A stretch of DNA of 64,000 bases from Lepidodermella squamata (taxonomy: Eukaryota > Animalia > Gastrotricha), in contig JBLDXI010000019.1 in NCBI GenBank assembly GCA_047495785.1, positions 2,852,001 to 2,916,000 of the forward strand, read 5' to 3'. Under the pieces are notes generated by a model that saw only the letters and a list, made by a program, of their open reading frames with translations, did not search any database and was not told the origin of the DNA. Below are positions 11,030 to 60,661 of this stretch, in pieces. Position numbers and translations under genes: made by a program. Numbering within the stretch: the first letter of the stretch is position 1; each line of letters begins with the position of its first letter.

Positions 11030-13882
11030 CTACCTCATTCCTTGCGTTTTGGCCGGGAGCATTTTGCTTGCTGGCTGCACTTGTGGAACAGCTCTTATTG
11101 GCGGCAGCTTATGCTGGCCGACCGCAAACTTCGGCTGTTGAGCCATGAATCCTGGCTGTTTGGGCGCTTGCACAGGCATCTGCATTAACGGAGGGTGCAT
11201 CAAGGCTTTGCTTTTTGACGCCTGGGCAAAGGTTTGCTCATAGTAAGGATTACGCTTTTCCCAGTTACCGAGAGTCGCCCCAACAGGCGTCACGGGTCTA
11301 CGGCCCTCTGAGCTGGCGGAATTAGGCTTAGCTGCATGGATACTGGTCTTTTTCTTGCACAGGCAAAATAGTACTATACCCACAATGACAGTAGCAGCAA
11401 CGCCACCAACCGTTCCGCCAATTATGTAGCCGAGATTAGGATTACCAGCAGCGTCGGAGGTACCGTTGTTGCCAGATGATGCTGAGCCTTTGTAGACCGA
11501 AGAAGCAGCATCCTCGCTGCTGCATGGATTAACAGTTGGCAGGCACGTGGAAAAATCAAGAGGACTGCCTATTTCAGCCAACATCATTTGTGCCATATCA
11601 GCCTCAGTCATCGCTGCTTGGAAGTCTCTTTGACCGATCGAAGCTGGATCGGTTGCCGCTCGTTTCCGTCGTTTGGCATTCACTGAACCCCCTGCATCGC
11701 AGAACCGTTTCGTCGCAGTCGGACTAATTGTGTATGTGATCCTAAAACAGCAGCCCTTCTCAGTTTTTGACGTATTGGCGTAGTTGGAATCTATGATGTC
11801 ATCTGTGTTGCTGTAGTTGAGGTTCACCGATTGCTTCTTCGTGTATCCTGGACAGCAAATCGAGTAGTTGGCGGCACAAGCTGAATTCAGTTTCTTCGCG
11901 ACATTGCTCTTGATGATTCGGCGTATCTTCATATAGTCATCAATCTTAGGCACAGGTTTGTATAGCAGATCGACACCTTTTGACTGTTCATCACTTGAGG
12001 CTGAACAACGATTCGGGTTGTCGCATTGTTGGTACTCTTTTGACCCGTCGGCCTTCAGTCGCCATTGCACTCCGATGCTGCACGTCGAGGAGCAGGCGGA
12101 CCAAAATGAGTTCGATAGGCCAGAGGGAGGTGGAACCCAGCCAGTTAAGTATCGATCGCCCTCTCTAAGTCTATCGGCCATCACCGTTGCCAAATCGCCT
12201 ATGGAGAACAAGCTTGCGGCAGTGGAGGTTGTAGTTGCCAAGACTCTTTCCTTGGTTGTAATTGCTGTGAAACTGGCTTGAGTAATGCTCGAAGTTTGAT
12301 TCAGAGATTGCGTCGAACCCGTTCTTCCAGTGACAACTGATTCTGATGTAATCATAGCAGCTGTGGGTGAGCTGGTTGCTCGGTTAGTCGCTGCGCTGCT
12401 GGTGCTGGAAATCATTAAAACTGTTGTTGACATGGGATTCGTAGGTGTTGTAGTTTGAGAGGAGGAGAATGCTTTCATATTAGTCGACGTTGTAATTTGC
12501 CCTGTCGTAGTCGAACTAGTAATGACTGAAGACGAATCTGTCTTCGAAGTTGTTGAGGCAGAAGTTGCCTTTGTAGTTGTCGAAGCTGTCGATGACATGA
12601 AATTCGTTGTTGTGGAAATAGTCGAGCTCGTACGCGTTGAAGTCGAAGTCGTAGATGAGCTTGTCGTTGGATTGGTAACAGGAATCGTCGAGGTCGTTCG
12701 AGTAGAAAGTGTTGTTGTCGAACTACTGACTGCCGCAGTTTGATTAGCTCTCCAGAACAGCATGTTTCTTATTGCCACATTTCCTGGGAGGGATTGTGAG
12801 ATTTATTAGTGAGCTATGAGCTATGGTGTTGGTAAAGAGTATTACCGATTGGAAGGCCGCCATATAGACGAATCTTCGAGTTGACATTTTCCAAAGTAGC
12901 CCCCATGCCTGGAAGGTTAGTGCCACTGAAGCAAATCAGAGGCGAAGCCACGCAATATGAGCTAAGTGGCGCCATAGCAACCTGGGTTTAATCATATCGC
13001 TCGGGTTAGTTGCGTAATGGTTTTCAAATTCTAACTTACAGTCAACACGTCACTTAAAAGCTGAACGATCAGACGAAATCGTGAAACGCCCGACAGAGAA
13101 AAGATCGAGGCACATGTAGTTGAAGTTATGTTCTCTGCTCCGGGCAACCACCCTTCTGAACCTGTAGCGAGAAGCAGCCTACCTGCCGGCTTCAACTCTT
13201 GCCACAGCGATAAACCAGTCATGATATGATAGTACAGATACGAGCTGTTATACTCTGTAAATCGGGTAGATGAAGTGATTTGGGGATAACTGACGAAATT
13301 TTGCTCACCGTACGAAGCGCCTGTTGCCGAAAAGATGAAGCCAAACCACGAGTTGCTATTGGATAAATTGGCTGGGAACTCAACAGTGACGTCTGTCTCC
13401 AATCGCCAGCTGTTGGCATTAGCGGGCTGAAATGCCGGGAAATGGTTTGCATGCGTAGCTAGTAAGTAAAGGCGAACTTACAATTGATAACCATGCGCCA
13501 TTGCTGCGAATCTCGAATGCCGTACTTTCTTGCGCGGCGTCATAATTCAAAGCTACGCTTGCTGATGCGTTAGACGCCTTAACAGCGTCGAATGAAAAGG
13601 CGGGCGCATATGCAGCATTCCACCCAGGCAGAGGCAAAGAGGTTGTGTCTGGAGCTGGTGTCCAGTTTCTTGAACCTGCAAGCATAAATAATAACCCCTT
13701 ATTGCTTTCGATTTTAGCGATGTTACTTGGATTGCTGCAAGCTGAAGAAGTCGTCGACGAGGGGCGAGTTGTAGTTTGCGAATTACCTGGGAAAGAAGCA
13801 GCAAAACTCAACGTAGGAATACGAGATATCAGGACTTACCCAGTGCAAAAGTAGTGCCAAACACGAGAATATATTGAAACAT
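11030..13882 (-). CDS. Type-I membrane mucin-stalk protein, paralog 3 (B-type N-domain only; tail ends GMR*)
   Basis: Signal exon MFQYILVFGTTFAL|gtaag (13882-13840), then exons GNSQTTT..., ...WLSI|PANANSWRLETD...FRLIVQLLSDVLT, and the large ORF 11030-12778. Confidence 0.85.
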
Positions 13883-15900: not shown

Positions 15901-18900
15901 TTATTTGAACTTCATGCGCTGGGCTTGGAACATGTGGCTGTTAGGCAGCATTTGTGGAGGGGGCTTCGGCGCCATTGCTCCAAGAGGCGGGAGTTTTTGC
16001 TGTCCAGGATATTTCGTCAATGAAGGCCCGACATCATGCGGTCTGGGTTCAAGCTGAGTTCGAATAAATCCCTTTGAAGCGGCGTTTTGCATGAGGGCGT
16101 TGCTTTTGGGCCCTTGAGTAAGAATTTTATCATAGTAAGGATTACTCTTGTCCCATTTGCTAAGCGTAGTCCCAACGGGCGTTGAGGGCCTTCTATCATC
16201 AGAGACCACCGAATTACGCTTAACAACACTCGAGCTTCCCTTTTTCTTACAAAGGAGATAATAGAAGGCAATTACCACAATGACAACGAAAACAACTCCG
16301 CCAACAACGCCCCCAATTATAACGCCAAGGCTAGGGTTGGAGGCAGCTTCTGACGTAGTGTTTCCAGGTGTGGTTGCTTGATTGACAGAAGAAGCAGAGT
16401 CTTCACTACTGCATGGATTGACAGTTGGCAGGCACGTAGAAAACTCCAGAGGGCTGCCAATTTCAGCCAACATCATCGAAGCCATATCAGGCTCGGTAAT
16501 AGCGGCTTGGAAATCACTTTGACCGATCGAAGCCGGCTCGGCTGCCGCTCTTTTCCTACGTTTTCCATTCAGTGAGCCAGCTGCATCGCAGAACTTCTTC
16601 GTCGCCGTCGGACTAATTGTGTATGTGATCCTAAAACAGCAGCCCTTCTCAGTTTTCGAGGTATTGGCGTAGTTGGAATCTATGATGTCATCTGTGTTGC
16701 TGTAGTTGAGGTTCACAGTTTGCTTTTTGGTGTATCCAGGACAACATTTCGTGTAGTTGGCTGCACATGCTGAGTTAAGTTTCTTGGCGACATTGCTTTT
16801 AATGATTCGTCTTATTTTTAGGTATTCGTCAATCTTAGGCACAGGTTTGTAGAGCAGATCGACACCCTTCGACTGTTCATCACTGGAGGCTGAACAACGA
16901 GTCGGGTTGTCGCATTGTTGATACTCTTTCGAACCGTCAGCTTTCAGGCGCCATTGCACTCCGATGCTGCAAGTCGAGGAGCAGGCGGACCATAAAGAGC
17001 TTGAGAGACCGCTCGAGGGTGGCATCCACGCGTTCAGGTATCGATCACCCTCTTTGAGCTTGTCAGCCGTCACCGATGTCAAATTGCTAACGGAAACAAG
17101 AATAACAGTCATTGCCGTAGTGGCTGATTTTGGTTTAACTGTCGAGCTCGCCCCAGCATTGGCTGCTACACTACTAATAGTCTGCAAGCTTGTGCTTGTG
17201 GAAGTGTCAATAAGGGTTGAGGTCGATGCTGTTAGCGCATTGTTAGCTGATGTCGAACTTGGCATAGCTATTATCGCCGAAGTTCCCGATGTGGAATCTG
17301 AAGCCGACGATGAAGTTGACTGCGTTGCACTTCCGGTTTTTCCTGCAGTCGAGACTGCTGTGTTAGTTGAGCGCGTGGCAGTAGAAGATGCCCAAGTCGG
17401 CGTTTGGCTTGAACTTATAGATGTTGTCGAACGTGTTGACGTTGGCAGTGTTGCAGTTTGGTTTGTGGTCGCAGATGCCATGGATTTTTGGGTAAAAGGT
17501 GAACTGCTTGTAGAAAGTGTTCCATTCAAGTGCCAGAAGAACATGTTTCTCATGGTGGCATTTCCTGTATTTTGCCTTCAATCAAATCTATATCAAACTC
17601 AAACCTTGATAAAAAAACCTGCAGTTCCAAAGCTCGCATACAGACGGATCTTGGTACTCACATTCTCAGTAATAGCTCCCGCGTTAGGTAAGCTGACCCC
17701 ACTGAAACAAATCAAAGACGCCGCCATGCAATCCGAGTTCATAGGAGCCATAGCGACCTGAGTTTGGCAAAAATATTTCAAGGCATTATTTATTAGCAAC
17801 AAGGTACCGTCAACATGTCGCTCCAAAGCTGAACAATCAAACGGAATCTCGAAACACCGGTCGAAGTGAATAATGGGCTACAGGTAGTTGAAGTGAGATT
17901 GGGTCCATCAGGCAGCATCCCCGAGGAACCTGTAGACAGATAAAGCTTGCCAGATGGCTTCACTTCTTGCCAAATGGAAAGCCCGGTCAACGTATTGTAC
18001 GCCATGGACCCATCATTATTGTGCGCTAGAAGGTAAAGGTAAAGGTAATAAGGTAAAATATCCACTGATTGAGGTTCAAAACTGACGAAAAACTAACAAT
18101 AAATCACGCTGGTTGACGAAATGACAAATGCGAACCACGTATTGTATGATATATTAGTTAGGTATCTCGTCGTTACATCAGTTTCCATTCGCCAGTTACT
18201 TTCGTAGGCAGGCTGAAACGCATTTTTATAATTAGACGTTTCATTCGGCAAAATCATCGCACTCACAATCGATAGCCAACCTCCAGAGTTATTTACGCTC
18301 TCTGTCAGCTCAAATCCCAAAGAAGTTTGTTTTGCAAACAGATTAAGCATTGGACTTGCAGATGCATCCGAAGCTAGGGTGGTATCGAATGAGAAATTCT
18401 GAGCATAAGTGGCAGTTGAGCCGTCCAAACTCAGCGAGTCAATGTCAGGCGTTGGTGTCCAGCTTCTAAGAGCTGAAATAGAGATATGTTTACACGTTAT
18501 TCAGTCTAGAACAATTTACCGCTCTTTGAACTACCGCATATTGGTGTCGTAGTTTGAGGGGGAGTTGCAGTAATTCCGCCCGGTGATAGCTGCCAAAAAC
18601 GTTGGCCAATGACGGCCAATGTTGCTAGAAATGAATTAAATCTCAGTTGGAAATTAACGAAGTCCAATCTCTAATACAGTAGTTTCCGAAGAAAGAAACC
18701 CAGCGCGGTTTCGCACTTCCTGTTCCAATCGCAGTGCCTGCTATTGAAGGAACGGGGACATCAGAGAAGCATACTGCAACTGGGGTCGTCCCATTGGCTG
18801 GCAGGGGCGCTAAAGCAACCTAGGAAGGATAAAAGTCTAATAAGAATCGGAACTACATTTGAATCTTTACGAAAGAAATGCTCAAAGATTACTCAGCGAA

Positions 18901-27386: not shown

Positions 27387-30147
27387 TTAATTATACTTCA
27401 TTCGCTGCGATTGCGCGTGTGGCATGTTGGTCTTTTGCAGCATCCTTTGTGGAGGGGGCTTAAGCGTCATTGCAAGAGGTGGAAGCTTTTGCTGACCAGT
27501 CGGAAATTTCGTTGATGCAGCCCCGTAATCAAACTGAGATGGTTTAGGTATCTTTGAAGCTGTCGGTTGCAATGAGACGTTGTTTTTTGGCGCTTGAGTG
27601 AGCATTTGATCGTAGTAAGGATTACTCGTGTCCCATTTACCAAGTGTAGTCCCGACTGGCGTTGGTGGCCTTCGACGTCCAGATACCCCAGAATTAGGTT
27701 TCACGTCACCTGTGTTGTCTTTTTTCTTACACAAACAATACAAAATTACAACAACGATGACAAAAGCAACGATTCCCCCAACGGCGGCCCCGATTATTAC
27801 GCCGAGACTGGGGCTGGACGTGGTATCTGATGTACTGTTGCCAGGTTTATAGGCAGAGGAACCATCATCCTCGCTGCTGCAAGGATTGACAGTCGGCAAG
27901 CATGTGGAAAACTCCAGAGGGTTGCCTATTTCCGCCAACATCATCGAAGCCATATCAGGCTGACTCATCGCGGCCTGAAAATCGCTCTGCGCAATCAAAG
28001 CTGGCTCAGTTGCCGCTCTTCTCCGACGCTTCGCAGTCATTGAACCGCCAGCATCACAGAACTTCTTTGTCGCCGCTGAGATGATGACGAAGGTGATCCT
28101 GAAACAGCAGCCCTTTTCAGTTTTCGAGGTATTTGCGTAGTTCGAATCGATGATATCATCCGTGCTGCTGTAGTTGAGGTTCACGTTTTGTTTTTTCGTG
28201 TAGCCAGGACAGCAAATCGAGTAGTTGGCTGCACAAACGGAATTGAGTTTCTTCGCCACATTGCTCTTGATTATTCGTCTTATCTTCAGGTAATCGTCAA
28301 TCTTAGGCACAGGCTTGTAGAGCAGATCGACGCCTTTTGATTGTTCATCACTGGAGGCTGAACAACGAGTCGGGTTGTCGCATTGTTGGTACTCTTTCGA
28401 ACCGTCGGCCTTCAGTCGCCATTGCACTCCGATGCTGCACGTCGAGGAGCAGGCGGACCATGATGAGTTGGAGAGACCGCTCGAAGGTGGAATCCAGGCG
28501 GTGAGATAGCGATCGGCTTCGCTGAGCTTGCCAGCACTTATTGATGACAAATCACAGATGGAAACAACAGTTTGTGCTGTGCCCGTAGTACCAACAATGT
28601 TTGCTACGCTACTGATCGTCGCGGCCTTACTACCTACAGTAGTTCCACTAATCGATGATTGAGGAATAGTTGAGGCAGTTGCAGACAACATGTTATTAGC
28701 TGTTGTGGAACTAGCCACAGATGAGATAGTGGTAGTGCTAGAAGTCACATCCGACCGAGCTGACGCTGAATTTGACGGCGATGCACTTTCAGTTTTTGCA
28801 GCAGTCAAGACTGTTGTGCTCGTTGAACGTGTTGAAGTCTGAGTCGAACTTGTTTGACTTAGGGTTGATGTCGAAATAGGGTATGTTGTAGTTTGAGTAG
28901 TGGCTGCCCGCGTTGCGGAGTTTGTAGACGATATCGAAGTCATTGTTTGAGTCTTTTGGGTAGAAGATGAATCACTAGTTGAAAGGCTTGTCGTTGTAGG
29001 GGGAGTCGCAGTAAGTCCGCCCGGTGATAGCTGCCAAAACCGATGGTTGATGATGCCGAAGGTCGCTTAATATAGAGAAATCTCAGTGAGAAAGTAGTAA
29101 AACGCATTTTTACCTATGGTTCCAAAGAAAGAAATCCAGCGCGGTTTTGCAGCCCCAGTTCCAATCGCAGTGCCTGCTATCGAAGGAACGGAGACATCAG
29201 AGAAGCATGCAGCAACTGGGGTCGCTCCATTGGCTGGCAGGGGCGCTAAAGCAACCTAGATTAGCATAAATAATTTAATCTAAAACTCGTAACTACATTC
29301 TAATGCTGCGTTTAGGTCATTTCAAATAAATTTCAATTAAGTAATGGCTAGAACGGAGCTGGCTGTCTTACCGTCAAAAGATTGTCGCTCAATTGAGCAA
29401 TCAGTCTGAACAACGCTAAGCCGGATGGCGCAGTGAAAACGTTTGATAAGCCGCAGCCAGGCTTCGACGTTGCAATAACGGGTAGCAACGGCAGGGTTCC
29501 AACAGCGTTACTTGTGGCTGAAGCGTATACTCGACCTCCGTAGCCCAACTCTACAACAATCGACAGTCCATTGATGCCTGAGCTCGTAATAGAAAGATTC
29601 CCTAAAAAGTCGATGACTAAAATCAGCGACAGGTTGCATAAAGTTAAATTACCGCTGTAGCTATCGTTGCTAATGAAGTTGTAATATCCATACGATGTTG
29701 ACGACAAAGTATAAGCTGCTTTTGCGAACGGAATGTCGCTATAAGTTGAACTTAAATCCATTTCAACTCTGAAATTTGTTGCGGTAGAGGGCACAGCCTG
29801 CATAAATAAATTATGTGGTCATAAATCAGTTTCGTCCGAGATAACTAGCCGTTGCAAAATTAATTCGCCCAACTGTGGAGGTATAGTTGTCGGTTAATGC
29901 GATGCCCTGGGTGCTTTGGGATGCCACATCGAACGTGGTGAATTTTGATGACGATACGTTTGCCCCGTCGAAGGATACCACTTGCTGGAAAATAGGCGCT
30001 CCAGCGTAAGAATAAGGCAAAGCCAGAGATGCTGTATCTGGAGACTGAGCCGCCCCTGATGGAAACTTTCATCTCCCGATACTGCATTGAAAAAGGTTTG
30101 AACATACCCAACGCCCATGTTACTGCCAATGCGAATAACGTGTTCAT
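27387..30147 (-). CDS. Type-I membrane mucin-stalk protein, paralog 5 (A-type N-domain)
   Basis: Signal exon MNTLFALAVTWAL; ORF pieces 29826-30020, 29348-29803 and 27387-28943; KRRRRAA, TM and NPYY. Confidence 0.85.
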
Positions 30148-34200: not shown

Positions 34201-37055
34201 ACAATCGGGCCGCCGTCGAATTTCCGACTACACTACGCAGAAAACGAACACAGAAAATGAACGTATGAAAACGAGGCTGGCTGTCGCAGGGGGCGTCCGC
34301 TCTCATCCGAACTCCGAACTTGCGCTAAAATTTTCAGCGGCCTCTGATATCTCCTTAAAAAAACCTTTTTGGGACAAAATTTGGCATATGCATTCCCTTA
34401 GAGCTGCTCTTTCAGTAATTGAAAGAAAAATAAAGGTTCTAAAATAGGTTTCGGCAGGACATTCACCTGAAATTCACCTGAAGATTATGTGGTGAGTTTG
34501 GACCCAAAAATGCAGTTTTCTAAAATTAGTTTGAGAAAATTGTGTTCATAATTTTTCTCAAAGTTCAGCCCATCACAATGAAATTTCGTTTGCAAATCAG
34601 CGGACAAAATAACTAGCTAATTACCAAATTTTATGAAAAATTTCGCTAAAAATATTTTTCAAAGTTCAAAATTCAGAAATTCAGAATTTTCGATGAATTT
34701 TCTTGAAATATCCTTGCAAATCTGTGGGAATTTACTCGATTTTACCTGCGGAGACGACGCCGTAGCAACTGCCGCAAGATTTTTGGTCATACGGCGCCAT
34801 GACAACGCCCTTCTCGACCCAGTCGAAATAGTTCGGCAGCCCATCGCAGCCATCAGAGCGCAACAGCGAGCCCTGGCGCTGGCGCTCACTCGGCGGCGGA
34901 GCAGCCAGGCCCAACGTGCCTCGCCTCGCATCCGGCTTCATGCCAGCAAATTTCGTGATACCCCTCGGGTGCTTCTCGAGACCGGCCTGGTACCGCTCGT
35001 TGTGAGCAACGATTCGCTGGTAATTGATCTCGAAAATGTCCTGCGCCTCTTCGTCTTCGAATTTCGCTATGTCTGGGAATTTTTCACAGTATTTCTTCCA
35101 TTCGACTTCGATGGAGTCGTAGATAGGAGCTTTTCGGAGCAAACGCCGGTTGCCTCGGGGCACCAGGCCGATTTCGGCCAGCGAGTCGAAGCCTTTGAAG
35201 TGGGCGTCGACTTCGGATGAGTTGAGGCCGAAATTGCACACGAGAACCTCGTCGATGTAACCGTAGAATGAGCCGAATTGCTGGTCTGACCCGATTGTTA
35301 GTGGTGTATGAGTCGTGGCAAGCCTTTGTTCTGTCCCCATAGTTGCTACTAGCTCCTAGAAAAATCAAGAAATAACGAACTTCAAACCAAAACTATATAA
35401 ATTTCCTTTAAAAATGTGAATTATTCGAAATTCGAATTTTTGAAATTAAAATAGTTTAAAATTAAAAACAAAATTGAAATTTTGAAAATCTCAAAATATT
35501 TAAAAAATTCTAAACATTTCGGAAACAATTGAAATTTTGAAAATTGGTTTTGATTGGTGTCGTAACTTTAAAATTTCGAGAACAAAATTTCAATTGTGAT
35601 TTCAATTTTTGAATTAATGATAAAAGTTATTCAAAATTGTTCTGCCTACATTATTGAGGTGGACGTAGGTCATACTCGCGTCGTGGACAACGCAGACCTG
35701 TTGAAAATCGGCGCCATTCGGTCCGATAATTTTGTTGACATCAACACTGATCGTCGAGTTCGATTTCGGATTTTTAAAGGCCAAGTTTGCTTCGACAGCA
35801 TCGCCAATTAGGGCTGCTATGATTATCGAAAATTCCGAGCCATCGGCGTCCTTGCTGTTCGAAACGAGGCCGCCGGTTGATGAGCAGGATGTCGTATTCG
35901 TTGGATCCAAACCGCATCTAAATTATGGCTTTGGTTACGCATCGTCAAGTATAGAAACGTTTACGGATAGGTACGAAAATGAACAATCGAAAATTTAAAT
36001 ATTTTCCAATATCATTTAAAATTATAAGAGAACTTCGAATTTTCTACTTGAAATTAAACATCTATTGAATTTAAAAAATGTTTGAATTTGAAATTTTTTA
36101 TTTGGAATTTAAAATTATTTTTAAATTTCAAAATTTCAAGAATTTCAAACCTGTAGAAAAAGCAGAAAGATGCCGAAGTTGCCATGTCGAAGTTTTTGAA
36201 CGCCGGAACTTCCAGCCAGCCTCCGAACGTTTTCAACGAACCGGAACCACGAGCTTTGTGCGCGAAACTGACTTCAGCCGCGCCGACAATCGACGTGGCA
36301 ACTTTTGCCGATGAAGAATCTCTAGCATCTTGGTCGAAATTCAAATACAGCGAACACTGCCTCGGCTGATTTAAATTGTGGTCAACAAAATCGGAACAGC
36401 TGCAGGTATCGAGGCGAAACGCCGAGCCAGGCGCGCATGGCTGAATTTTCGAATTGTCCGTGTTTTCTAGGTCAATTAATTTGAACTCATCGTGGTGATC
36501 TTCCACTGAGCCCAGGTAATTTCCATAAGAATCTCGGCATAGAGTTGAATTTATTTGAATCGGCGGCATTTGCGTGGTTGGCGGCGAGAATTTTCGATTA
36601 TTCACGCATGGCTGCGTGCAATTTTCGTCGGACTCGCATGAGCAGGTCTCAACCTGGAACCGGGTTCCATTCGGGCAGCAAAACGGGTAGCTGATCTCGT
36701 TAGCGCAGACGAAAAATGAATTGCAAGAAATTTTCGACCCGTAGCAGCCATGCGTGGCTGTGTCCTCGTTTCGACACGGGTCTGAGCAGGGCGAATCTGG
36801 GTTCTCAGGTACACACTGCAGGTGAAGGTCGTGCCAAAATAGGCCCTGGGCGCATTTTCTCAGGTACCCGATCGCATTAGTCTCGTTCAAATAAAAGCAT
36901 TGGTAATATTGGTGGCAGTCAAGCGGATCGGCGTATAAATCTAGCTGATTGCGGCGGTTTGAAATTGAGAAGCAAAATTTATTAGGATCAGGCGCTGTTC
37001 TAGCAATAGAAATTGCACTTGTTGCAGACAAAAGTAAAAAAATTGAAATAATCAT
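31262..37055 (-). CDS. Secreted multidomain papain-family (C1A) protease: signal peptide, CBM14 x2-3, LamG/ConA-like domain, I29 propeptide, C1A domain, Thr-rich/acidic tail
   Basis: Six exons, frame-consistent: 37055-36151, 35917-35650, 35355-34746, ~33400-33283, ~33135-32797 and ~31682-31262. Motifs YADPLDCHQYYQC...CAQGLFW, LYLNFD...LTIG...FYGYIDEV, ERFNIN-like IFEINYQRIVAHN, QKSCGSCY, NHAV and NSWG. Confidence 0.88.
32346..32534. mobile_element. Intronic CCGTA-family MITE (shorter, inverted relative of 590-1000)
   Basis: TA|CCGTATTTGTTCCAATA ... TATTGGAAAAAATACGG|TA; subterminal sequence shared with 590-1000. Confidence 0.75.
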
Positions 37056-45721: not shown

Positions 45722-48700
45722 ATGAACTACTCATCAGAAATCACCGAAGCCATCGAAGCGTGTCGAAAATTCGGTTTCAACGCAGCGTCAACAGCTAGAA
45801 AAATGCTCGACACAAAATTTCATCCTAAAAACCGAAAATCGATCGATCGAATTTTCATCCCGGAATTCTTAAACAAAATCAGCGAATTTCCTGAAGAAGC
45901 TATCGCTTTGTTTTGCGATAAAATGCTCGAAACAAAAGATCTCGAGGGATTCCTATTATTCCTAATAAATTCAGACCTGCTGATGATCGATCATCTACTG
46001 ACTACGACTTTTTCGATGTCAAACTGCGAAAAATCTGATCGAATCGCCGAAATTCGATTTGCGATGATTCGATTCATGTACAGCGATTTGACAGTATTCT
46101 CCTGCCCTGACTACATCAACAGTTCGCCACAAAAAGTCAGGATTTACCACGATTCAACTTTTGCAAAAATTCAGAATTACATGCCACGGACTAGCGATGT
46201 TTACCTGAAGGCAAAATTCGAAGGACTCTGTTCGAGAAATTCAAGGCATAGCTGTCTAGTTTTACACGGCGATTCTGGCCTTGGGAAAACCATGGCTGCC
46301 ACACATGCCGTAGTTCTGAATGAACCTCTACTTAAATCTTGCGGCATCACCACAATTGCATGGTTGAACTGCTCGATCGTCCCGGCTAATAGCAGAAACT
46401 ATTTAGCGAGAAATGCCTTTTTCGAAAATTTAGCCAGGATTTTCAGCTTGAAATACCACTATGGAGATGTTAATGAAGTCGACTTCGTCGTCCGAAGGTT
46501 CCTGCGCGACTATTCAGCTCCGAATAGGAAGATTCTGCTAGTCCTCGACAACATCAGCCATCCCTACATCCTCAAACTTGCAGAGAATCTGGGTGAAAAT
46601 GTCCCCGTTCTGGCGACGAGTAGAAATTCCACATTCAAACATTTTCATGATTTCAATGAAATTCAAATCATGCATATGGCCGATGAACGTATTACCGAAC
46701 TTGCCAATCAGGAACAACCAGAGTTATGCTTAGGATCGCCATTTGTTGCTTCAGTTGTCGGTTCCAGAATCCTAGGCCCAGCTTCAGAATCCGCCGTTTT
46801 CAGCTCAAATTGGACACCTTACGAAGTCGACTGCCTGAAACTGCTTAAACAAGTTTTCGATGACCTGTCTGAAGTAGATAAGAAGCGATACCTAGTATTT
46901 CTATTATACATCCCAGAGATTCCATTCGCGCTTGAAGATTTAGCTATTTTATGGAATTTCGAAGATTTGAGCCTAGTTAAGCAGCAGATCGCAATTTTCT
47001 TGGAGAAATCACTGGTTAAGAAAACAGAAGAATCAAAGTTCGCAATTCATCCAATGCTATTCGATGTGGCCTACCATTACGCCGTAAAGTATTACAGGCT
47101 CGATCCTTACTCGGCTATCATCGACGTAAGGCGATACATTTTGTTGGAAAATCGCGAATGGTTTGAAAAAATTGTGACTAACAAAAGGGTCCAACTTCTC
47201 GAAGCTATTGTCGAACATTTTCTCAGTGAAGAATGCTATTCCTTGGGAACTAAAGACGTTCTGCTCGAATATTTCTTTCCCAATGAGGAGAGTACTCCTC
47301 TTACGATCCTTATCGATTCCAAGCTGGAGAAGCGATTTGACAAGACTGGAAATATTGGGTTGGCAACTCTTGGAAAAATTCTGAACAAATTACTCGAAAA
47401 GGAGTATTCCAGTATCGACAAGTCCTATTTCGCTAGATTCAAGAGAATTTTCAGTAAGCCACAAGATGAGTCACGTGACTACCGACTAATTGCTTTGAAA
47501 CGATGCGAGAGTACTGGATTATGGCCTAAAATGCTGGAAACAGTGGAGAATGGACGATTTTGGTACGAAAACATCATGCTAACAGCTGCTGAGCTTGACT
47601 TCGATGAATTGGCGATAATGTTTCTCGACGATGAAGAATTCTTCAGCCGAATTGATGTGATTGATAATGACGGCGAGAATATGTTGATGAAAGCAGTTCG
47701 TGGTGGTAGTTTTAGAGTGGCATTGGCGATTCCGCAGTCGTACGATGCCGTTGAAGCTAAGGTGTACAACCAAGTGAATCGCAGTGGTGAAACTGCGATC
47801 ATGATTGCGATAACAGGTGACATTAGCGGATATTCCTACCTGGCGGAGACAATGATGAAAACTGGAAAGTGCGATTTCGCAATGGAGACGACGCCCGAAT
47901 TCGAGAGGACGCGATCAGTTGGTGCTCATTGCTTGTGGCGAATCAGGTAGGCTCCACAACATATTTTCGAGCCCCATCGGTTTCCTTCTCCCTTGTTCAC
48001 CTTGCCCATCGTTTCGCATTAATTTCTAACTACAGATCCCTTCAGACACTAAATTCAGATATCGCGGCCATATACCTATATATTATAATTAGCCGCATTT
48101 TCTTTTTCAGAAATCAAACCGAACCATCCGTTCTGGAAGAAATCTCCGTTATCGCTCACCTAGAGCCAGATGAAATCGAGTTTCTCGACGTAATTAAAGA
48201 CAATACGGAATATGGGGACAGTGCAAAGTTGAAACCTTGCGACGAGATTAACGACCTCCTGTTACGCAGCCTATTCGGCAACGAAATAACGGCGAATCTT
48301 TCGAAAAGCTCACGAAATCTCATGAAACAAATCTACAACTTCAACCATACAAAAGAGCTCGATTTGGACTCCCAAGGATTCAGCCTGAAAGATTTGTCCT
48401 TAGGTCTACTTCTCGCTTGTACTATTGGTAGTGAAGCTGCGGAAAGCCTCATTAAAAGAGGAGCGAATGTTGACGTGAGGAATCAAGTTTCCCCGGCCAG
48501 AACGGCTTTAATGGAAGCTACTAGAAATGGCAACGAGGCTGCAATGAAAACTCTCCTGGAAAACGGGGCAAACGTTCATGCGAGAGACGATCAAGCCCTG
48601 ACTGCCATTTACTACGCTGCTCGGCATGACAGAGATGTAATAATGCGACTTCTCATTGAAAAGGGAGCTAATGTCAAAGACAAGAATCGATACGGCGAAC

Positions 48701-49236
48701 CCGTTCTTAAAATCGCTGCGAAATGCGGCTCCGTTCAATGTACAGAATTTTTGTTGAAAAATGGCGTCAATATTGACTCCCCGGACGAAGATAACATGAC
48801 ATCGTTGATGGAAGCTTGTTATCAGGGTTTCGAAAACAACGTAGTCGCTTTGCTGATTTCATCGGGAGCGAAACTTGATGCAAAGGATGATTCAGGCTCA
48901 ACTCCTCTCATGTGTGCTATAATCACTCGTCACCCTAAAGTTGCTGCCATGATTTTGGACCACCCAATCGGAGCTAGCACGATAGACACAATGAATAATG
49001 AAGGCAATACCGCTCTAATGATGGCTGTTCAGTGTTTGAGTGATGATGAAACAATCAAGTTGTTGCTGGACCGGGGCGCTAGGTTGGATTTGCGGAATCC
49101 GAGGACGAATAAGACGGCTTTAGACATCGCGCTAGACGTATTGGACTGCTACCCGTCTTATGCTTACGCCTTGGGCTATCGGCCTCCGTTATGGCGGCGT
49201 GTCTGTGGATTTTTCGTATTGGAACTTATGGATTAA
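45722..49236 (+). CDS. APAF-1/CED-4-like NB-ARC (STAND) NTPase with C-terminal ankyrin repeats, copy 1 (about 1116 aa, 2 exons)
   Basis: Exons 45722-47946 and 48111-49236 (phase-2 GT-AG intron). Walker A GDSGLGKT, Walker B ILLVLDNI, LATSR, CLGSPF (GxP), LWN...LEKSLV...IHPML; ankyrin repeats TALMEA, TAIYYAA, TPLMCA, GNTALMMA, KTALDIA. Confidence 0.88.
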
Positions 49237-52452: not shown

Positions 52453-55400
52453 ATGAGCTTATCACCAGACATCAGTGAAGCCATCGAAGCTTGTCGAAAA
52501 TTCGGCTTTAATGCAGCGTCAACAGCTAGAAAAATGCTGGACCCTAAACTGCATCCCGAAAATCGAGAATCCATCGAACGCATTTTCAGCTCAAATTTCC
52601 TACAAAAAATCACCGAATATCATGATGAAGCTATCGACCTATTTTGCGAGAAAATGCTGGAAACAAAATGTCTTGAGGGCATCTTATTATTCCTTATAAA
52701 TTCGGACCGACTGCTTATCGATCATTTGATTACAACGAATTTTTCGATGTCGAACTGCGAAAAATCTGAACGAATCGCCGAAATTCGATTTTCGATTATT
52801 CGATTCACCTACAGCGATTTGACAGTATTCTCCTGCCCTGACTACATCAATAAATCGCCACAAAAAGTTAAGATTTACCACGATTCGACCTTTGCGAAAA
52901 TTCCGAATTACATGCCTCGTACTAGCGATGTTTACCTACAAGCAAAATTTGAAGCGATTTGTTCGAGAAATTCACAAAATAATTGCCTGGTTTTACACGG
53001 CGATTCAGGTCTAGGAAAAACGATTGCTGTCACCCATGCCATAGTTATGAATGAACCTTTACTTAAGTTTTGCGGCATCACCACAATTGCATGGCTGAAC
53101 TGCTTGATTTTTCCGCCTACGAGCAAAGGCTACTTAGCGAGAGAGGCGTTTTTTGAACATTTGGCCCGGATTTTCAACCTGAAATACCAATATGGAAATT
53201 GCAACGAAGCCGACTACGTCGTTCGAAGATTTCTGCGCGACTATTCAGCTCCGAATCGGAAAATTCTGCTCGTCCTTGACAACATCAGCCACCCTTTCGT
53301 CCTCAAAATAGCGGCGAATATCTGCGAAAATGTCCCTGTTTTGGCGACGAGTCGAACTTCGACTTTCAAGTATTTCCTAGATTTCGATGCGATTCAAATC
53401 ATGCATATGGCTGATGAACGTATTTCCGAACTTGCCAATCGGGAACAACTAGAATTATGCTTAGGGTCGCCATTTGTTGCTTCAGTTGTCGGTACTAGAA
53501 TTCAAGAGCCAGCTTCAGAATCCGCTGTTTTCGGCCTGAATTGGACCGCATTCGAGGGCAACTGCATAAGACAGCTTAAACAAGTTTTTGATGAACTTTC
53601 GGAAGCAGACAAGGAGCTTTACCTAGCTTTCCTCATTTACCTGCCCGAGATCCCACTCGAGCTGGAGGATCTAGCTATTTTATGGAATTTCGAAGATTTG
53701 AACAAGGTCAGGAAGGAGATTAAGAAATTTCTCGAGAAATCACTGGTCAAAGAAGCGGAAGATTCCAAGTTCGCAATTCATCAAATGCTATTGGAAATAA
53801 TTTATCGATTTGCTGTGAATTTATTCGGCCTCGATCCTTACTCCGCTGTCATCGACGTTAGACGATACATGTTGCTGCAGAATCGCGAATGGTTTGAAAA
53901 AATTGTGACTAACAAAAGGGTCCAACTTCTCGAAGCTATTGTCGAACACTTTCTCAGTGAAGAATGCTATTCCTTGGGAGTAAAAGAGGTTCTGCTCGAA
54001 TACTTCTTTCCCAATGAAGAAGACACTCCTCTTGCGATCCTTATCGATTCTAACCTGGAGAAGCGATATGACAAGGCTGGCAATATCGGGTTAGCAACAG
54101 TTGGAAAAATTCTGAACAAATTACTCGAAAATGAGAATACGAATATCGACGAGTCTTTTTTTGCTAGATTCAAGGGAATTTTCAGTAAGCCACAAGATGA
54201 GTCACGTGACTACCGACAAATCACTTTAAAACGATGCAAAAGTACTGGCTTATGGGCAAAAATGTTGGAAACTGTCGAGAATGGGCGATTTTGGTACGAT
54301 AACATAATGCTAACAGCTGCTGAGCTTGACTTCGATGAATTGGCGATAATGTTTCTCGACGATGAAGATTTCTTCAGCCGAATTGATGTGATTGATAATG
54401 ACGGCGAGAATATGTTGATGAAAGCAGTTCGTGGTGGTAGTTTTAGAGTGGCATTGGCGATCCCGCAGTCGTACGATGCCGTAGATGCTAAGGTGTACAA
54501 CCAAGTGAATCGTAGTGGCGAAACTTCGATTATGATTGCGATAACGGGTGACCTTTGTGTGTATCCTTCCGTGGCTGAGACGATGATGAAAACTGGGAAG
54601 TGCGATTTCGCAATGGAGACGACGCCCGAATTCGAGAGGACGCGACCAGTTGGAGCACATTGCTTGTGGCGAATCAGGTAGGCTATAAAGCAGCATATTT
54701 TCGTACCCCATGGTTTCTCCCTTCTCCCGAGGGATCTTTCATTTCAATTTAATGTACTTTCTTGTCTTGCATTCGATTCAGACCTCTTTTGAAGCGGCAA
54801 TATAGGTATGTATAACTCTTTGCATTTTCAGAAATCAAATCGAACCATCCATTCTGGAAGAAATTTCCGAAATTGCTCACCTTCAGCTAGATGAAATCGA
54901 GTATCTGGACGTCATTAAACCAGCTATGGAATCAGGCGACAGCGCAAACCTTGAGCCATGCGACGAAATCAACGACCTTCTGTTACGAAGCCTGTTTGGA
55001 AACGAGACTACGTCAAATCTTTCGAAAGGCTCACGAAATCTCATGAAACAAATCTACAACTTCAACCATAAAAAAGAGCTCGATTTTGACAACCAAGAAT
55101 TCAGCCTGATTTGTCCTTAGGTCTACTTCTTGCTTGTAATATTGGTAGTGAAGCTGCGGAAAGCCTTATTAAAAGAGGAGCGAATGTTGACGTGAGGAAT
55201 CAAGTTTCCCCGGCCAGAACGGCTTTAATGGAAGCTACAAGAAATGGCAACCAGGCTGCAGTGAAAACTCTCCTGGAAAACGGGGCAGATGTTCATGCGA
55301 GAGACGATCATGCCCTGACTGCCATTTACTACGCTGCTCGACACGACAGAGATGTAATAATGTGCCTTCTCATTGAAAAAGGCGCTAATGTCGAAGACAG

Positions 55401-55950
55401 GAATCGATATGGCGAACCCGTTCTTAAAATCGCTGCAAAATTTGGATCCGTTAAGTGTACAAAACTTCTGTTGGACATCGGGGTTGATGTTGATTCTCCG
55501 GATGAAGACATCATGACGGCGCTGATGGAAGCCTGCAATCAAGGTTTTGAAGAAATAGTAGCTATGTTGATTGAATCAGGAGCGAAAATTGATGCCCAGG
55601 AAGATTCAGGCTCGACTCCTTTCATGTACGCTACAATCACTCGCCACCCTAAAGTTGCTGCCATGATTTTGGACAATCCTATCGGCGCTAGCACGATAGA
55701 CGCAATGAATAATGAAGGCAATACCGCTCTAATGTTGGCTGTTCAGTGTTGGAGTGACCGTGAAACAATCAAGTTGTTGCTGGACCGTGGGGCTAGGTTG
55801 GACTTGCGGAATCCGAGGACGAATAAGACGGCTTTAGACATGGCGCTAGACGTATTGGACTGCTACCCGTCTTATGCTTACGCCTTGGGCTATCGACCTC
55901 CGTTATGGCGGCGTGTCTGTGGATTTTTCGTATTGGAACTTATGGATTGA
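52453..55950 (+). pseudogene. NB-ARC + ankyrin gene, copy 2, with a 4-bp deletion frameshift (truncated protein or recent pseudogene)
   Basis: Exons 52453-54677 and 54832-55950. Copy 1 has AGCCTGAAAGATTTG where copy 2 has AGCCTGATTTG (~55108), giving TAG at 55118-55120; the downstream ankyrin frame stays open to 55950. Confidence 0.8.
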
Positions 55951-57988
55951 CGATTGCATCGATGTGACCGCCTAACTTATACTGTTTCGTCAGTGAAAAA
56001 AGCTGAACATGCTAGTATACTCATATTATCCTCTCCTTGTTAAGCTGAAACGTAAACTTCGGTAACTTTGATAATAAAAAATATGGTATTCGGTCGGAAA
56101 CTTTAAGCTACAGAAGAATAAGAATCTTGAGGAAAACCACAGATCACAAACTACTTGTTACCAAATCGGAGCAATGGATCTACATTCCGCCTTCCGCTTG
56201 TGTGTGGCTGGTTTTTGCCCCTGTCTCCTTTCCGGGACTGTTCGCTTGAGGAAAAAGGTGGATGTCGTGGAAATCACGGCACGAAAAAACTGGTGAGCAT
56301 GAGGCGTTGATCCTTCGTTACCACCACTGATAGTACACAAACCTTGGAAGAGATTCGGCTTAGAGAGAGTCGCGTAGCTCATGACCTTCATGATGAAATT
56401 GATTGGTTCGATTGCTGAGATCAAGAATTCTTTCTTGGCCCGAATGAAGTGATGGACCGATTTCAAGATTCGGAAAACTGGCAATGAGGGACGTAATAGC
56501 CTGGAGAAAAGATACGTTGTAAGGAATACATATGGAATATTCATAGAGAAAGAAATGGTCATTTTTTTCTCTATGGGAATATTGTGAAAAAGTCACCATA
56601 TCCTCAAGGGAAAAGGGAATCTGGCAATTCGAAATGAGTCGCCAATACGTCCTCTTCTAATAGCGATTCCAAGCACGTTTCACAAGCCGTTGAATTGTCG
56701 CACGAAAGCGAAAGGCAGCTCAAAGCTGTCCTGCAGCAGGCAAAACGTTGGGCATCGCTTGCATCGCACTTTCGAAGATTTAATGTCATCTGAATCGTCC
56801 TATAACTCTGCAACCTGCCCTGAATTATATGTTTCCCTTCTCTTCTGGGCGATACGGCTTCTTAAATAAATAGATAAACAAATAAACAATCTTGCAGCGT
56901 TTGGTGCGTAGATTAGATGGGTTTATTGCCTGGACTAGGTCGGCAATAGACATTTTTTCAAGGCCATAGGTATTCCATTGCTCCGATTTGAGTGCAGCTA
57001 TGACCCTAATCAAGACACTCAAGAGGCTCCGTGATATTTTCGAAGAGATAAAACTTAAAGCCTGTTGCTTGTTGCCAAAACTAGATATTGCATGGCGTTG
57101 ATAAGCATGACAAAAAGAATTTTTTTTTATATCCGGTGTTATATCAGGTGATTGGAGATACTGGTAGAAAATATAGGTTATGAAGGTCACCAAGTCACCA
57201 AGCTCTCTGGACGACAACGAGCAAGCGATCGTGACTGACGGATGACAGTAATGTCTGACTGTGGAATTTTTCCCGGAAAATCGGAAACATAATGAATCGC
57301 GATCTCCATCGCGCGGTGAGCCAACGGCCGATATTGACTTCGCATTTAGCCTTATTCGATAGATTGATTCGCCGTATTGATATTCAATCGCAGAGATATA
57401 AAACCTATTATTTTTAACATCATTCTCATCATTATCGATGCCATAAATAGATATTGGACTAGACCTCGTTTCAGACAGATTAATTTTAGCAGTTTTTTTA
57501 TTGCAACACTTTCAAATGAAAGGCTTTTTTAAGCCTCGTGGCGCATATATATCGATAGGAATAGCATGACACAGTCTGTCTAGCTGATTTCACTATGAAT
57601 CCATTAAATCCGCTCTTTTGCGGTAAGAAAAATGAGTTATGACCTTATGCTGCACCACGATCATTTGTCAATTTTTGTTTTCCAGTTGTAAAATGACTGC
57701 GGCTAAACACATGTTTTCCTGAATTAATTTCATAAAAACTCAAGTTTTAAATAAAAATAATTTATTTAGTTATTTTGGTGAATGTTTTGGCGGGCTGGGA
57801 AAATTAGGAGCAGATGAGAGCAGATGAGAGCAGATGAAAGAATACACCTCTAGTGTAAATGCGACGTGTATTATAAATTAGGATTCATGAGAATAGAGCG
57901 GATGAACAAACTCAAAAGAGGAATTCAGCAAAATTAATTAGACAAGTCACTACCCTTGCGGTAAATCAGGCTTTCAGCGCGAACATTT

Positions 57989-58918
57989 TTAAGCCTCCTG
58001 GTAGTTTTCCCCACCGCGCTTGGCCTCCTGGTAGTTTTCCTCGCCACGCTTGGCTTCTTGGAGGTTCTCTTCACGGGGACGATAACGCTTGGCTTCTTGG
58101 ACGTTCTCTTCACGTGGACGATAACGCTTGGCTTCTTGGACGTTCTCTTCACGGGGACGATAACGCTTGGCTTCTTGGACGTTCTCTTCACGGGGACGAT
58201 AACGCTTGGCTTCTTGGACGTTCTCTTCACGGGGACGATAACGCTTGGCTTCTTGGACGTTCTCTTCACGGGGACGATAACGCTTGGCTTCTTGGAGGTT
58301 CTCTTCACGTGGACGATAACGCTTGGCTTCTTGGACGTTCTCTTCACGGGGACGATAACGCTTGGCTTCTTGGAGGTTCTCTTCACGGGGACGATAACGC
58401 TTGGCTTCTTGGACGTTCTCTTCACGTGGACGATAACGCTTGGCTTCTTGGACGTTCTCTTCACGGGGACGATAACGCTTGGCTTCTTGGACGTTCTCTT
58501 CACGGGGACGATAACGCTTGGCTTCTTGGACGTTCTCTTCACGTGGACGATAACGCTTGGCTTCTTGGACGTTCTCTTCACGGGGACGATAACGCTTGGC
58601 TTCTTGGAGGTTCTCTTCACGGGGACGATAACGCTTGGCTTCTTGGAGGTTCTCTTCACGTGGACGATAACGCTTGGCTTCTTGGACGTTCTCTTCACGG
58701 GGACGATAACGCTTGGCTTCTTGGAGGTTCTCTTCACGGGGACGATAACGCTTGGCTTCTTGGAAGTATTCCTCGCCACGCTTGGCCTCCATGAGAGGAT
58801 TTGAAATGACTGCTGCAACCTAGTTATAAAATGCATTTATCGCTAAAATATATCGATTCTGCAGACATTAATAGGTAAAATTTACCAAACAGGCTGCTAT
58901 CATAAGCTTGAACACCAT
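57989..58918 (-). CDS. Secreted repetitive prepropeptide (neuropeptide/pheromone-precursor-like), 287 aa
   Basis: Exon 1 at 58918-58886 (MVFKLMIAACL), 66-nt GT-AG intron at 58885-58820, exon 2 at 58819-57989 (VAAVISNPLMEAKR...). Contains 18x YRPREEN(V/L)QEA-KR plus GEEYFQEA, GEENYQEA and a terminal GGENYQEA*. Confidence 0.82.
58047..58765. repeat. 39-bp coding tandem repeat, 18 near-identical units
   Basis: Unit acgcttggcttcttgga(c/g)gttctcttcacg(g/t)ggacgata; only two variable positions. Confidence 0.97.
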
Positions 58919-58993
58919 TTTACGGTTTGAAAAAAACGACAGCTTAAAGATTCGAAAAGAAAATATTTTGTGATGAATGCTGGCGTTGGTGTA

Positions 58994-59030
58994 GAATGAA
59001 ATTTTCATCGGTATCGGTCACGTTTTATAG
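58994..59030 (-). promoter_or_regulatory. TATA box + initiator of the prepropeptide gene
   Basis: Minus strand TATAAAA at 59029-59023 and Inr-like TCATTC at 58999-58994; the TATA starts 32 nt upstream of the Inr A. Confidence 0.6.
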
Positions 59031-59270
59031 GCTGGCCATCTAGTTCATTTCAGTAGTTGCGAGTGATGAATCGTCTTTGCCTGCGATCAAGGGTGCCGTT
59101 AAAGATGGTCTTCTGGTGGCATCGCTCCATGCAAGTTCAGCTGTCATTTCTATCCGCAAAACTTTTTTACGCAAAATAGATAGCATTATTTGAATAATCA
59201 TGAATAAGCTGCTTCTTTCTTCATTTTGAACAGCTTACGCCATCCATCATCGAAATGTCCGGAATTAGTA

Positions 59271-60661
59271 GAGTGAACGGTTCTAACTTCGGACAGTGCC
59301 TCAAATTCGGACAGGGTAGTGTGCCTAATTTCGGACGTCCGAAATTAGAGCTATCGCGCTGCTAAGTTTGCGGCGATTGAAGAAACCAAAATGTAACTGT
59401 TTACGCGCTCAATTTTGTGACGCAGCAATGGTTGATGAATCAAAACTGAAAAATTGAAATTTATATTTTTAATTTTTATTGATGTTTATTCTAGCTATTG
59501 CTTTTAACTTTGAAAATTCATCTGAAATCAAGATACTAATCATGCAAAATGATAGGTACAAAGGGGATTACTTAATTCAGTGATTTTCAAGTCACGATTT
59601 TCGCGTCGTTTTTTCGCGGTTAGCCTCGTTCTTTGCGGTTAGCAGAGGTCCGCTTGTTTATCACTTGCATTTCGCGCGCGTTTGACTTCAAGAAGCATTT
59701 GAATCTGAAAATCGCTGTATTACCTATTTTATACTTGTATGGTATAACATGAGTAAAAAGTTCATTTCTGAACGGAGCCGACCGAGATTTACGAATCGAA
59801 ACGAGCCGGAGGCGCGTTCAGATATAAACGATTTACGAATTTTATACCGTAAAATATCGAATCGGCCAAGCTACTCGACCTATATTTTTCAGGACTATTC
59901 TATATTTCATATAGTTCATATTTCATTATTCATGTTCACGTTTTTTAATTTCGTAATTATTTTTAATTTCTCGTTTTTTGAAGCTTTTTTTGGTCATTTT
60001 TCACTCGGCCGCTCGATATCAGCCCTGCAGGCTCAAGTATTACTCGTAAACGGACAGCTTATAGCGCGAAATACTCGTAAAATGACGATCTATCGGTTAG
60101 GCATGATAAGAGGAAAATTTAGATTCTAGTGAAGGCTTGAAACCCGAAAACCCATATTTAGTGGAAATCTAGGGCTGGAGTCTCAAAATTAGTGCTGGAA
60201 ACCTAAATTTAAGGTGCACACTTGCCACTCCCATTGTCATCTAGTTACTGTATACCTTTGTCTCAAGGAAATCGAGTCAAAATACGCCAAATGGTTCACA
60301 ATTTTTTTCAAATTAAAATATTTCTTATCGATACTATGTGATCTTTGTTAAAGCGGCAAACCAGATATTCCTCATCGCCTAGTAGAAGGCTTTCGAATGA
60401 CTCCAAATTCAAGGTTAATGGGATTTACCTCGATGTGTCCGAAATTAGGGCACCTGGGGCCCTAACTTCGGACAGCACGACAATGGCTAAAGAATTAACA
60501 AGAAATCAAGGTAAATAGATGTAAAAATTTGGAAAATTGCTACAGGTATAGCCAGATAGCCGGGCCACAGGTTTGCCACTTGGCACTTTTCCCCCATTTC
60601 ATTCCCACAAAAGCCGAGAATTCTTTGACTGCTTGGTGTCCGAAGTTAGAACTGTTCACTC
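59271..60661. mobile_element. ~1.4-kb non-autonomous TIR element, GAGTGAAC family
   Basis: TA|GAGTGAACGGTTCTAACTTCGGAC ... GTCCGAAGTTAGAACTGTTCACTC|TA; 60370-60450 matches the arm of the 23327-23669 MITE. Confidence 0.8.

Follow-up and report, generated by a model that had tools for sequence, protein, structure and literature searches.

On the minus strand of a 64,000-nucleotide stretch of the genome of the gastrotrich Lepidodermella squamata (contig JBLDXI010000019.1, positions 2,852,001 to 2,916,000; the whole stretch is called the window below), we found what is very probably, to judge from its sequence, an animal gene of two exons that encodes a secreted repeat protein. Its predicted product is a 287-residue, secreted and disordered polyprotein, which would be expressed from a single promoter with an E-box, a TATA box and an initiator (Inr), and which mainly consists of 18 copies of the unit YRPREEN(V/L)QEAKR. 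We are confident that this is a real gene encoding a secreted repeat protein. That the protein is a precursor processed into peptides is a less secure proposition, to which we give somewhat better than even odds. The explanation that we prefer as a whole, namely a real gene, part of a lineage-specific family of cassettes, whose precursor is cleaved to release peptides, has in our estimation about an even chance of being right.

A preliminary description of this DNA had mentioned a 39-bp repeat, open in several frames and reminiscent of a minisatellite. Tandem Repeats Finder indeed identified a 39-bp unit present in 18.4 copies (58046-58764, 97% matches, score 1361). Two frames are open across the array on each strand, four in all, which means that openness is by itself no proof of coding. 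Also as described, a 33-nt first coding exon is joined through a phase-0 GT-AG splice to only one of these frames, the one containing EAKR (Table 1). An in-frame TAG (58822-58820) immediately precedes exon 2, so that only the splice allows this frame to continue upstream. Its translation reads, in this order, VAAVISNPLMEAKR, GEEYFQEAKR, 18 times YRPREEN(V/L)QEAKR, GEENYQEAKR, and GGENYQEA followed by the stop codon, in exact agreement with the list of units given before (12 with Val, 6 with Leu, and the flanking ones). There are 21 KR sites in the encoded precursor, one at every unit boundary, and the last unit is the only one not closed by this pair. The spacing of the TATA box and the Inr-like motif was likewise found to be as reported.

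Table 1. Features of the repeat-protein gene in the window, and positions of the other family loci.
Feature	Position	Strand	Remark
E-box element GACAGCTGAAC	59131..59150	-	CAGCTG at 59143-59138; about 225 nt 5' of ATG
TATA box, TATAAAA inside GCCAGCCTATAAAA	59023..59029	-	-111 from ATG
Inr-like TCATTC	58994..58999	-	its A lies 32 nt 3' of the TATA start
Transcription start, predicted	near 58997	-	from Inr position
5' untranslated region, predicted, about 79 nt	58919..58997	-	from Inr and ATG positions
ATG	58918-58916	-	
Exon 1, coding part, 33 nt	58886..58918	-	MVFKLMIAACL; n-region and start of h-region of putative signal peptide
Intron, 66 nt, phase 0	58820..58885	-	GTAAAT...CTAG; GT 58885-58884, AG 58821-58820
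Exon 2, 831 nt	58819-57989	-	
Exon 2 leader VAAVISNPLMEAKR	58778..58819	-	remainder of putative signal peptide, then NPLMEA and first KR
Ancestral-type 10-residue unit GEEYFQEAKR	58748..58777	-	from translation
Array of 18 x 39 nt	58046..58747	-	12 x YRPREENVQEAKR and 6 x YRPREENLQEAKR; from repeat finding and translation
Two terminal ancestral-type units	57992..58045	-	GEENYQEAKR, then GGENYQEA (without KR)
Stop codon TAA	57991-57989	-	
3' untranslated region, inferred	57988 to about 57740	-	
Poly(A) signal AATAAA	57761..57766	-	225 nt past stop
Other family loci (G000)	C19:3086 kb, C54:1911 kb, C2:892-896 kb, C2:986-987 kb, C2:994 kb		
Other family loci (G000), continued	C29:2976 kb, C40:230 kb, C19:2339 kb, C24:3306 kb		

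Two queries, the 3' units and the stretch running from the promoter to the leader, were used to search the 121-Mb source genome, and a two-exon scan of the loci retrieved was added. Ten further loci were found, so that the family comprises at least 11 genes, that of the window included. Therefore, the gene is not an isolated novelty; the earlier interpretation holds as far as the gene model, the frame and the KR punctuation are concerned, and overlooked the membership of the gene in a larger family. In all 11 genes, the first coding exon is 30 or 33 nt long, has the form M(M)xKLxIAACL and keeps its phase; the intron (53-67 nt) lies at the same codon and in the same phase, with a GT donor and an AG acceptor (TAG in 10 genes); and exon 2 starts with VAAVxSNPLxEAxR. 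The splice and the signal-peptide-like N-terminus proposed for the window gene are both backed by this conservation in the 10 paralogues. Upstream, the E-box motif is found at -218 to -227 from the ATG in 10 of the 11 members and a TATA box at -111 to -119 in 8, while TCATTC occurs at the matching position in four (the window gene, paralogue L009, one gene of locus L011, and L012). Downstream, AATAAA or ATTAAA is present 209-225 nt past the stop codon in 9 of the 11. The recurrence of this layout of promoter, exon, intron and leader at 10 other loci is more than would be expected from chance.

The sequence differences among these genes are distributed as would be expected for a spliced coding gene. 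Compared with its closest paralogue (L009), the window gene shows 88% identity in exon 1, 83% in the leader, 66% in the intron, 70% in the 5' untranslated region and 54% in the 3' untranslated region. Across the paralogues, identity amounts to 59-66% in the intron versus 79-88% in the exons, the difference being less clear for L014 (56% versus 70-71%). Changes in exon 1 are mostly synonymous or replace one hydrophobic residue by another, and indels in the intron do not keep to multiples of three. The better preservation of the exons than of the intron and untranslated regions, together with the nontriplet intron indels, argues for a conserved spliced coding gene rather than a satellite.

Evidence on the reading frame came from the paralogues, as the array of the window gene is too young and homogeneous for a synonymous-site test of its own. 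It contains only two variable sites, CCC/CCA, which is synonymous, and GTC/CTC, which exchanges Val and Leu. The 31 units of L009 comprise 8 DNA variants and a single protein variant, all 6 variable sites being synonymous third positions, and the same applies to 6 of the 7 variable sites of L011 when these are read in the EAKR frame. Read in the other open frames, the unit differences of the paralogues would alter the protein. This synonymous variation indicates that the EAKR frame, which had already been picked out as the coding one, is the frame that is translated and selected. We give next to no credence to the idea that coding takes place in another frame or on the opposite strand, or that the array is a noncoding satellite. 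The four open frames would allow it, but the synonymous pattern is seen in the EAKR frame alone, the conserved signal exon joins no other frame, and a conserved start is missing from all the others. Within the window gene, the QEAKR tails of the three ancestral-type units also vary synonymously only (CAA/CAG, GAA/GAG, CGT/CGC, GCC/GCT).

The family members carry different units, in arrays of up to 47 units. GEENYQEAKR makes up the 31 units of L009, 21 of the 27 modal-length units of L010 and 19 of the 20 modal-length units of L011. GEAAYEEAKR and GEAGYEEAKR units are found in L011, L012 and the 503-residue L014, and REAGYEEAQR units in L015 and L017. In the nine intact members, KR or RR is present with a fixed period at nearly every unit boundary, the exception being one merged 20-residue unit in L014. 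The residue at P1 of these pairs is always Arg and that at P2 is Lys or Arg, no KK or RK being found, and the last unit of each of the nine lacks a dibasic pair. Furthermore, a single aromatic residue, which is nearly always Tyr, is present in 187 of the 194 internal units of the family.

Some of the paralogous loci showed particular arrangements. In the region of L011 (G000:C2:985500-988200) and L012 (G000:C2:993600-995900), a truncated paralogue of 72 residues with 5 GEAAYEEA units adjoins the next full gene; its stop codon almost directly precedes the 5' untranslated region of this neighbor, which has neither E-box nor TATA box. The array of L012 is mixed, as it contains 9 units of the GEAAYEEAKR type (one of them GEAAYREAKR) followed by 4 GEENYQEA units, and this presence of two unit types shows that cargo is exchanged inside one array. 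Finally, L015 (G000:C29:2974000-2977100) and L017 (G000:C40:229800-232800) are near-identical REAGYEEAQR genes on different contigs, with about 25 and 10 units, respectively. These two may be alleles or haplotigs, or else stem from a recent duplication accompanied by a change in copy number.

Alignment with the paralogues showed that YRPREEN(V/L)QEAKR corresponds to the family decapeptide to which YRP has been added through a 9-nt insertion, with Gly replaced by Arg and the core Tyr by Val or Leu. On this comparison, the ancestral unit of the family is the acidic, Tyr-containing decapeptide GEENYQEAKR, and the unit of the window gene is a derived one. The window gene is the only member with the YRP insertion, and the back-translated pattern KRYRPRE(E/D) had 18 matches in the 121-Mb genome, all of them inside the window array. 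The gene shares with the rest of the family the E-box and TATA box, the signal exon, the position and phase of the intron, the leader, the KR/RR-bounded units, the last unit without a pair, the AATAAA about 220 nt past the stop codon and the half-unit EEN.QEAKR, and it still contains three complete units of the ancestral type. It differs in that its main unit has 13 residues instead of 10, with a new Tyr that immediately follows KR and has basic surroundings. This unit follows the family rule of one aromatic residue per unit, but with the Tyr at a new position. The change also affects charge. Each unit of the window gene contains two extra Arg, while the paralogues have almost no basic residue beyond the dibasic pair; the uncut window protein has a pI (isoelectric point) of 9.7 and a charge of about +15, whereas paralogue units of the GEENYQEAKR type are net acidic.

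The YRP insertion and the Gly-to-Arg change are the sole distinction of the window gene from its paralogues, and with the two Arg that they add to each unit they raise the idea of a further cleavage, in which a monobasic cut after Arg-Pro-Arg would make the basic N-terminal piece, YRPR or YRP, the product and the acidic EEN(V/L)QEA a spacer. The Lys at P6 of such a site fits the classical rule for monobasic sites, but subtilisin-like convertases do poorly with a Pro at P2 and a Glu at P1', and in the units from which EEN.QEA descends this part is not a spacer but the conserved core. We consider this further cut to be highly improbable.

The spliced N-terminus has a Lys at position 4, a hydrophobic core of 12-13 residues and a V-I-S or V-A-A cleavage motif. 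Averaged over 9 residues, its Kyte-Doolittle hydropathy ranges from 2.1 to 2.9 for start positions 1-10. These features resemble those of a signal peptide, which according to the -3/-1 rule would likely be cut after S17 or A14. A single-sequence AlphaFold2 model of the protein had a mean pLDDT (predicted local distance difference test) of 53 and a pTM (predicted template modeling score) of 0.15, with coil throughout the array and no fold, and the protein is accordingly predicted to be disordered. As for the machinery that could act on it, the genome contains about 10 convertase loci with a P_proprotein domain and a homologue of 7B2 (Secretogranin_V).

We also considered modifications of the putative peptides. 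All repeat units end in ...QEA-KR and, as noted in the preliminary description, none has a Gly before the dibasic site that could serve as amide donor. Sulfation of the Tyr of the main unit is not plausible from its context, as this residue sits between KR and RPR, which are basic. Tyr is found in an acidic context only in the three flanking octapeptides and in the units of the paralogues, and its sulfation in the EENYQEA context of the latter is plausible. A multi-exon tyrosylprotein sulfotransferase (TPST) gene is present in the genome (L020, G000:C21:1456800-1458800, minus strand), two pieces of which match TPST1/2 entries of the PDB (1e-21 and 1e-26). Another sulfotransferase candidate, on contig C42, had no PDB relative and was dropped in favor of the one on C21.

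In the processing scheme that we favor, removal of the signal peptide would be followed by cleavage after each KR in the secretory pathway by a convertase of the PC2/PC1 or kexin type, and by trimming of the K and R by a carboxypeptidase. This would release 18 nonamidated undecapeptides, YRPREEN(V/L)QEA, and, as minor products, NPLMEA (a cut of the signal peptide after A14 would give a slightly longer leader peptide in its place), GEEYFQEA, GEENYQEA and GGENYQEA. The calculated average masses are 1390.5 for YRPREENVQEA, 1404.5 for YRPREENLQEA, 938.9 for GEENYQEA and 972.0 for GEEYFQEA, while the uncut protein would amount to about 34.2 kDa once the signal peptide is removed. Furin is an unlikely candidate because P4 is a Glu, a residue that is unfavorable for this enzyme.

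The main rival to this scheme is that the protein is secreted and stays uncut, as a disordered, highly charged repeat polymer (for example an adhesive or cement, a component of a matrix or egg envelope, a partner in a coacervate, or a hydrophilic protectant), in which the conserved Tyr would serve for cross-linking and KR would be a mere charge pattern. The nearly invariant single aromatic residue per unit recalls adhesives made of Tyr/Lys decapeptides, the predicted disorder and the Glu at P4 would also suit an uncut protein, and the basic window protein and its acidic paralogues could form a polycation/polyanion pair. The dibasic pairs, however, with Arg always at P1, Lys or Arg at P2 and neither KK nor RK, fit better with the specificity of convertases, and the last unit stops just short of the position of the pair in the nine intact members. 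Purifying selection on each residue of a core of 8-11 residues is, moreover, unusual for bulk material, and 21 exposed KR sites would be unlikely to escape the convertases that the genome encodes. We therefore regard an uncut polymer as unlikely, though as the alternative to be taken most seriously.

We compared a 701-nt stretch (58720-59420), chosen so as to avoid the long array, with contigs from sequencing runs. Run X2 is genomic: the intron is present, and a 560-nt contig is identical to the window. Run X1, which carries another organism label, perfectly matched the unit coding for QEAKRYRPREEN, with high depth, which indicates that the unit is present in a second sample. The X1 contigs that matched are short and consist of units only; the flanks from the window are absent and the order of the units differs at the edge of the array. 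This run may be DNA, its contigs adding up to 118 Mb compared with 121 Mb for the genome.

Several observations weigh against the favored explanation. None of the runs containing sequence of the locus or of paralogue L015 is recorded as RNA, and no exon-exon joint was found in the X2 or X1 contigs over 58720-59420. Run X3, which has the same organism label as the window (22 Mb of contigs), contains L015, while the window gene is not listed for it; this weakly suggests that the gene is weakly expressed or silent in the X3 sample. Two members of the family, L013 and L018, are decayed. No relative with a known function was found among proteins, in Pfam or in papers. The Glu at P4 means that processing would need a PC1-, PC2- or kexin-like enzyme in the producing cell, and the strict conservation of residues and the regular period also fit an unprocessed repeat protein.

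The results on the runs and the decayed relatives would also be explained if the window gene were a young, silent or decaying duplicate, its array being now a minisatellite in a disused gene. The array is 97% homogeneous and, being young, provides little information on its own selection. Against this, the frame of 287 codons is intact over 18 units, as are the ATG, the splice sites, the TATA box, the Inr, the E-box and the AATAAA; the tails of the flanking units have only changed synonymously; and the unit was recovered without mismatch from X1, a run with another organism label. A disused duplicate appears to us rather improbable.

Searches for relatives outside the genome bore out the statement that the peptide is unrecognized. 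A word-indexed protein similarity search with exon 2 gave no match. A profile made from nine paralogue N-termini had 131 matches among 1.84 billion protein representatives; the top-scoring and the shortest of these were periodic proteins of low complexity with no relation to the family (pentapeptide repeats, mucin-like proteins and others), none of which contained the leader. Scores in the ESM Atlas did not exceed 0.80, with nothing related, and the peptide strings of the window and paralogue units were not found in full-text papers. Two Pfam hits were rejected: Lysostaphin_N, a family with 13-residue repeats, scored 34.1 bits against a gathering threshold of 60 bits and matched in period only, and a spore-surface family, with 25.7 bits over 11 residues, matched in period or composition. 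By these comparisons the genes constitute a new, lineage-specific family of a known architectural kind.

Other features of the window were noted. Within the inferred 3' untranslated region of the gene lies a perfect microsatellite of 3 x 10 bp (GAGCAGATGA, 57808-57837). On the 5' side, 59270-59420 had about 20 times the single-copy depth in DNA run X2, with several contigs diverging at its edges, and probably represents one end of a repeat or transposon present in many copies. Five open reading frames (ORFs) of 518-669 residues on the minus strand (2275-4284, 6491-8335, 11030-12778, 15901-17553 and 27387-28943) have no Pfam match and are paralogues of each other (54-74% identity), forming a tandem family of unknown proteins. 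On the plus strand, 45722-47950 and 52453-54681 encode 742-residue paralogues with 80% identity and only a weak match to AAA_22, below the Pfam cut-off; each is followed by an ORF with ankyrin repeats (47869-49236 and 55111-55950). A chitin-binding Peritrophin-A (CBM_14) domain is encoded by an ORF at 36054-37055 on the minus strand.

If peptides are released as proposed, a poorly sampled animal would produce short acidic or zwitterionic peptides in very large quantity, from a dozen genes of a kind that escapes annotation pipelines and homology searches. The family would also be a clean case of precursor diversification, in which small indels alter the cargo and repeat expansion spreads it, the regulatory and processing frame being fixed. 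More generally, the family is a reminder that an array resembling a minisatellite can, in a compact animal genome, be coding sequence under strong constraint.

Among known systems, animal precursors of the FMRFamide type contain many copies of a short core per precursor. The window gene resembles such multicopy prohormones by its putative signal peptide, its near-identical short cores, its dibasic separators and the presence of convertases and 7B2 in the genome; it differs from them by the lack of an amidation Gly, the lack of sequence similarity, the acidic or zwitterionic nature of its cores and the number of paralogues (at least 11). Mussel foot protein 1 is an adhesive with a decapeptide repeat rich in Tyr and Lys. 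It is, like the product predicted for the window gene, secreted, disordered and basic, with tandem units of about 10 residues containing one Tyr and basic residues, but there is no similarity in sequence, and the units described here are rich in Glu and have a strict dibasic pair with Arg at P1 in every unit. In insects, honeybee apidaecin is a case of several peptide copies made from one defence precursor. Drosophila Baramicin is a secreted defence precursor of multiple peptides, with furin-type RxRR sites and few repeats (PMC8423362). These insect precursors also belong to lineage-specific, fast-evolving families and give several short copies by convertase cleavage; the products predicted here are, however, not of the cationic or proline-rich antimicrobial type.

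The fungal Kex2-processed repeat proteins (KEPs, secreted fungal proteins with at least three KR-flanked repeats) and yeast alpha-factor have a signal peptide and tandem cores flanked by KR (PMC6339444, PMC7329392, PMC9769878), a repeat layout that the window gene shares. The genome that we searched contains markers of an animal host (4 Wnt loci and about 25 nuclear-receptor ligand-binding domains), which places the family outside the fungal KEPs; there is also no homology and no sign of neighboring modifying enzymes. Chitin_bind_4 and Col_cuticle_N gave no match in searches run without a positive control, and this gene content reads as that of an animal of bilaterian grade, probably neither an arthropod nor a nematode. 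The likeness, which concerns a possible way of working and not membership, is that the core is swapped while the processing frame stays constant. By analogy, the family might be an animal counterpart of the KEP system, with a fixed cassette of promoter, signal and leader and a fast turnover of cargo, a suggestion that we regard as speculative and doubtful. If it were correct, the window gene would represent the birth of a new cargo, the 9-nt insertion having given the Tyr a new place and the unit the opposite net charge, and the product would be either a new secreted peptide for signaling or defence, or a basic counterpart to the acidic paralogues, for instance in a secreted coacervate or cement.

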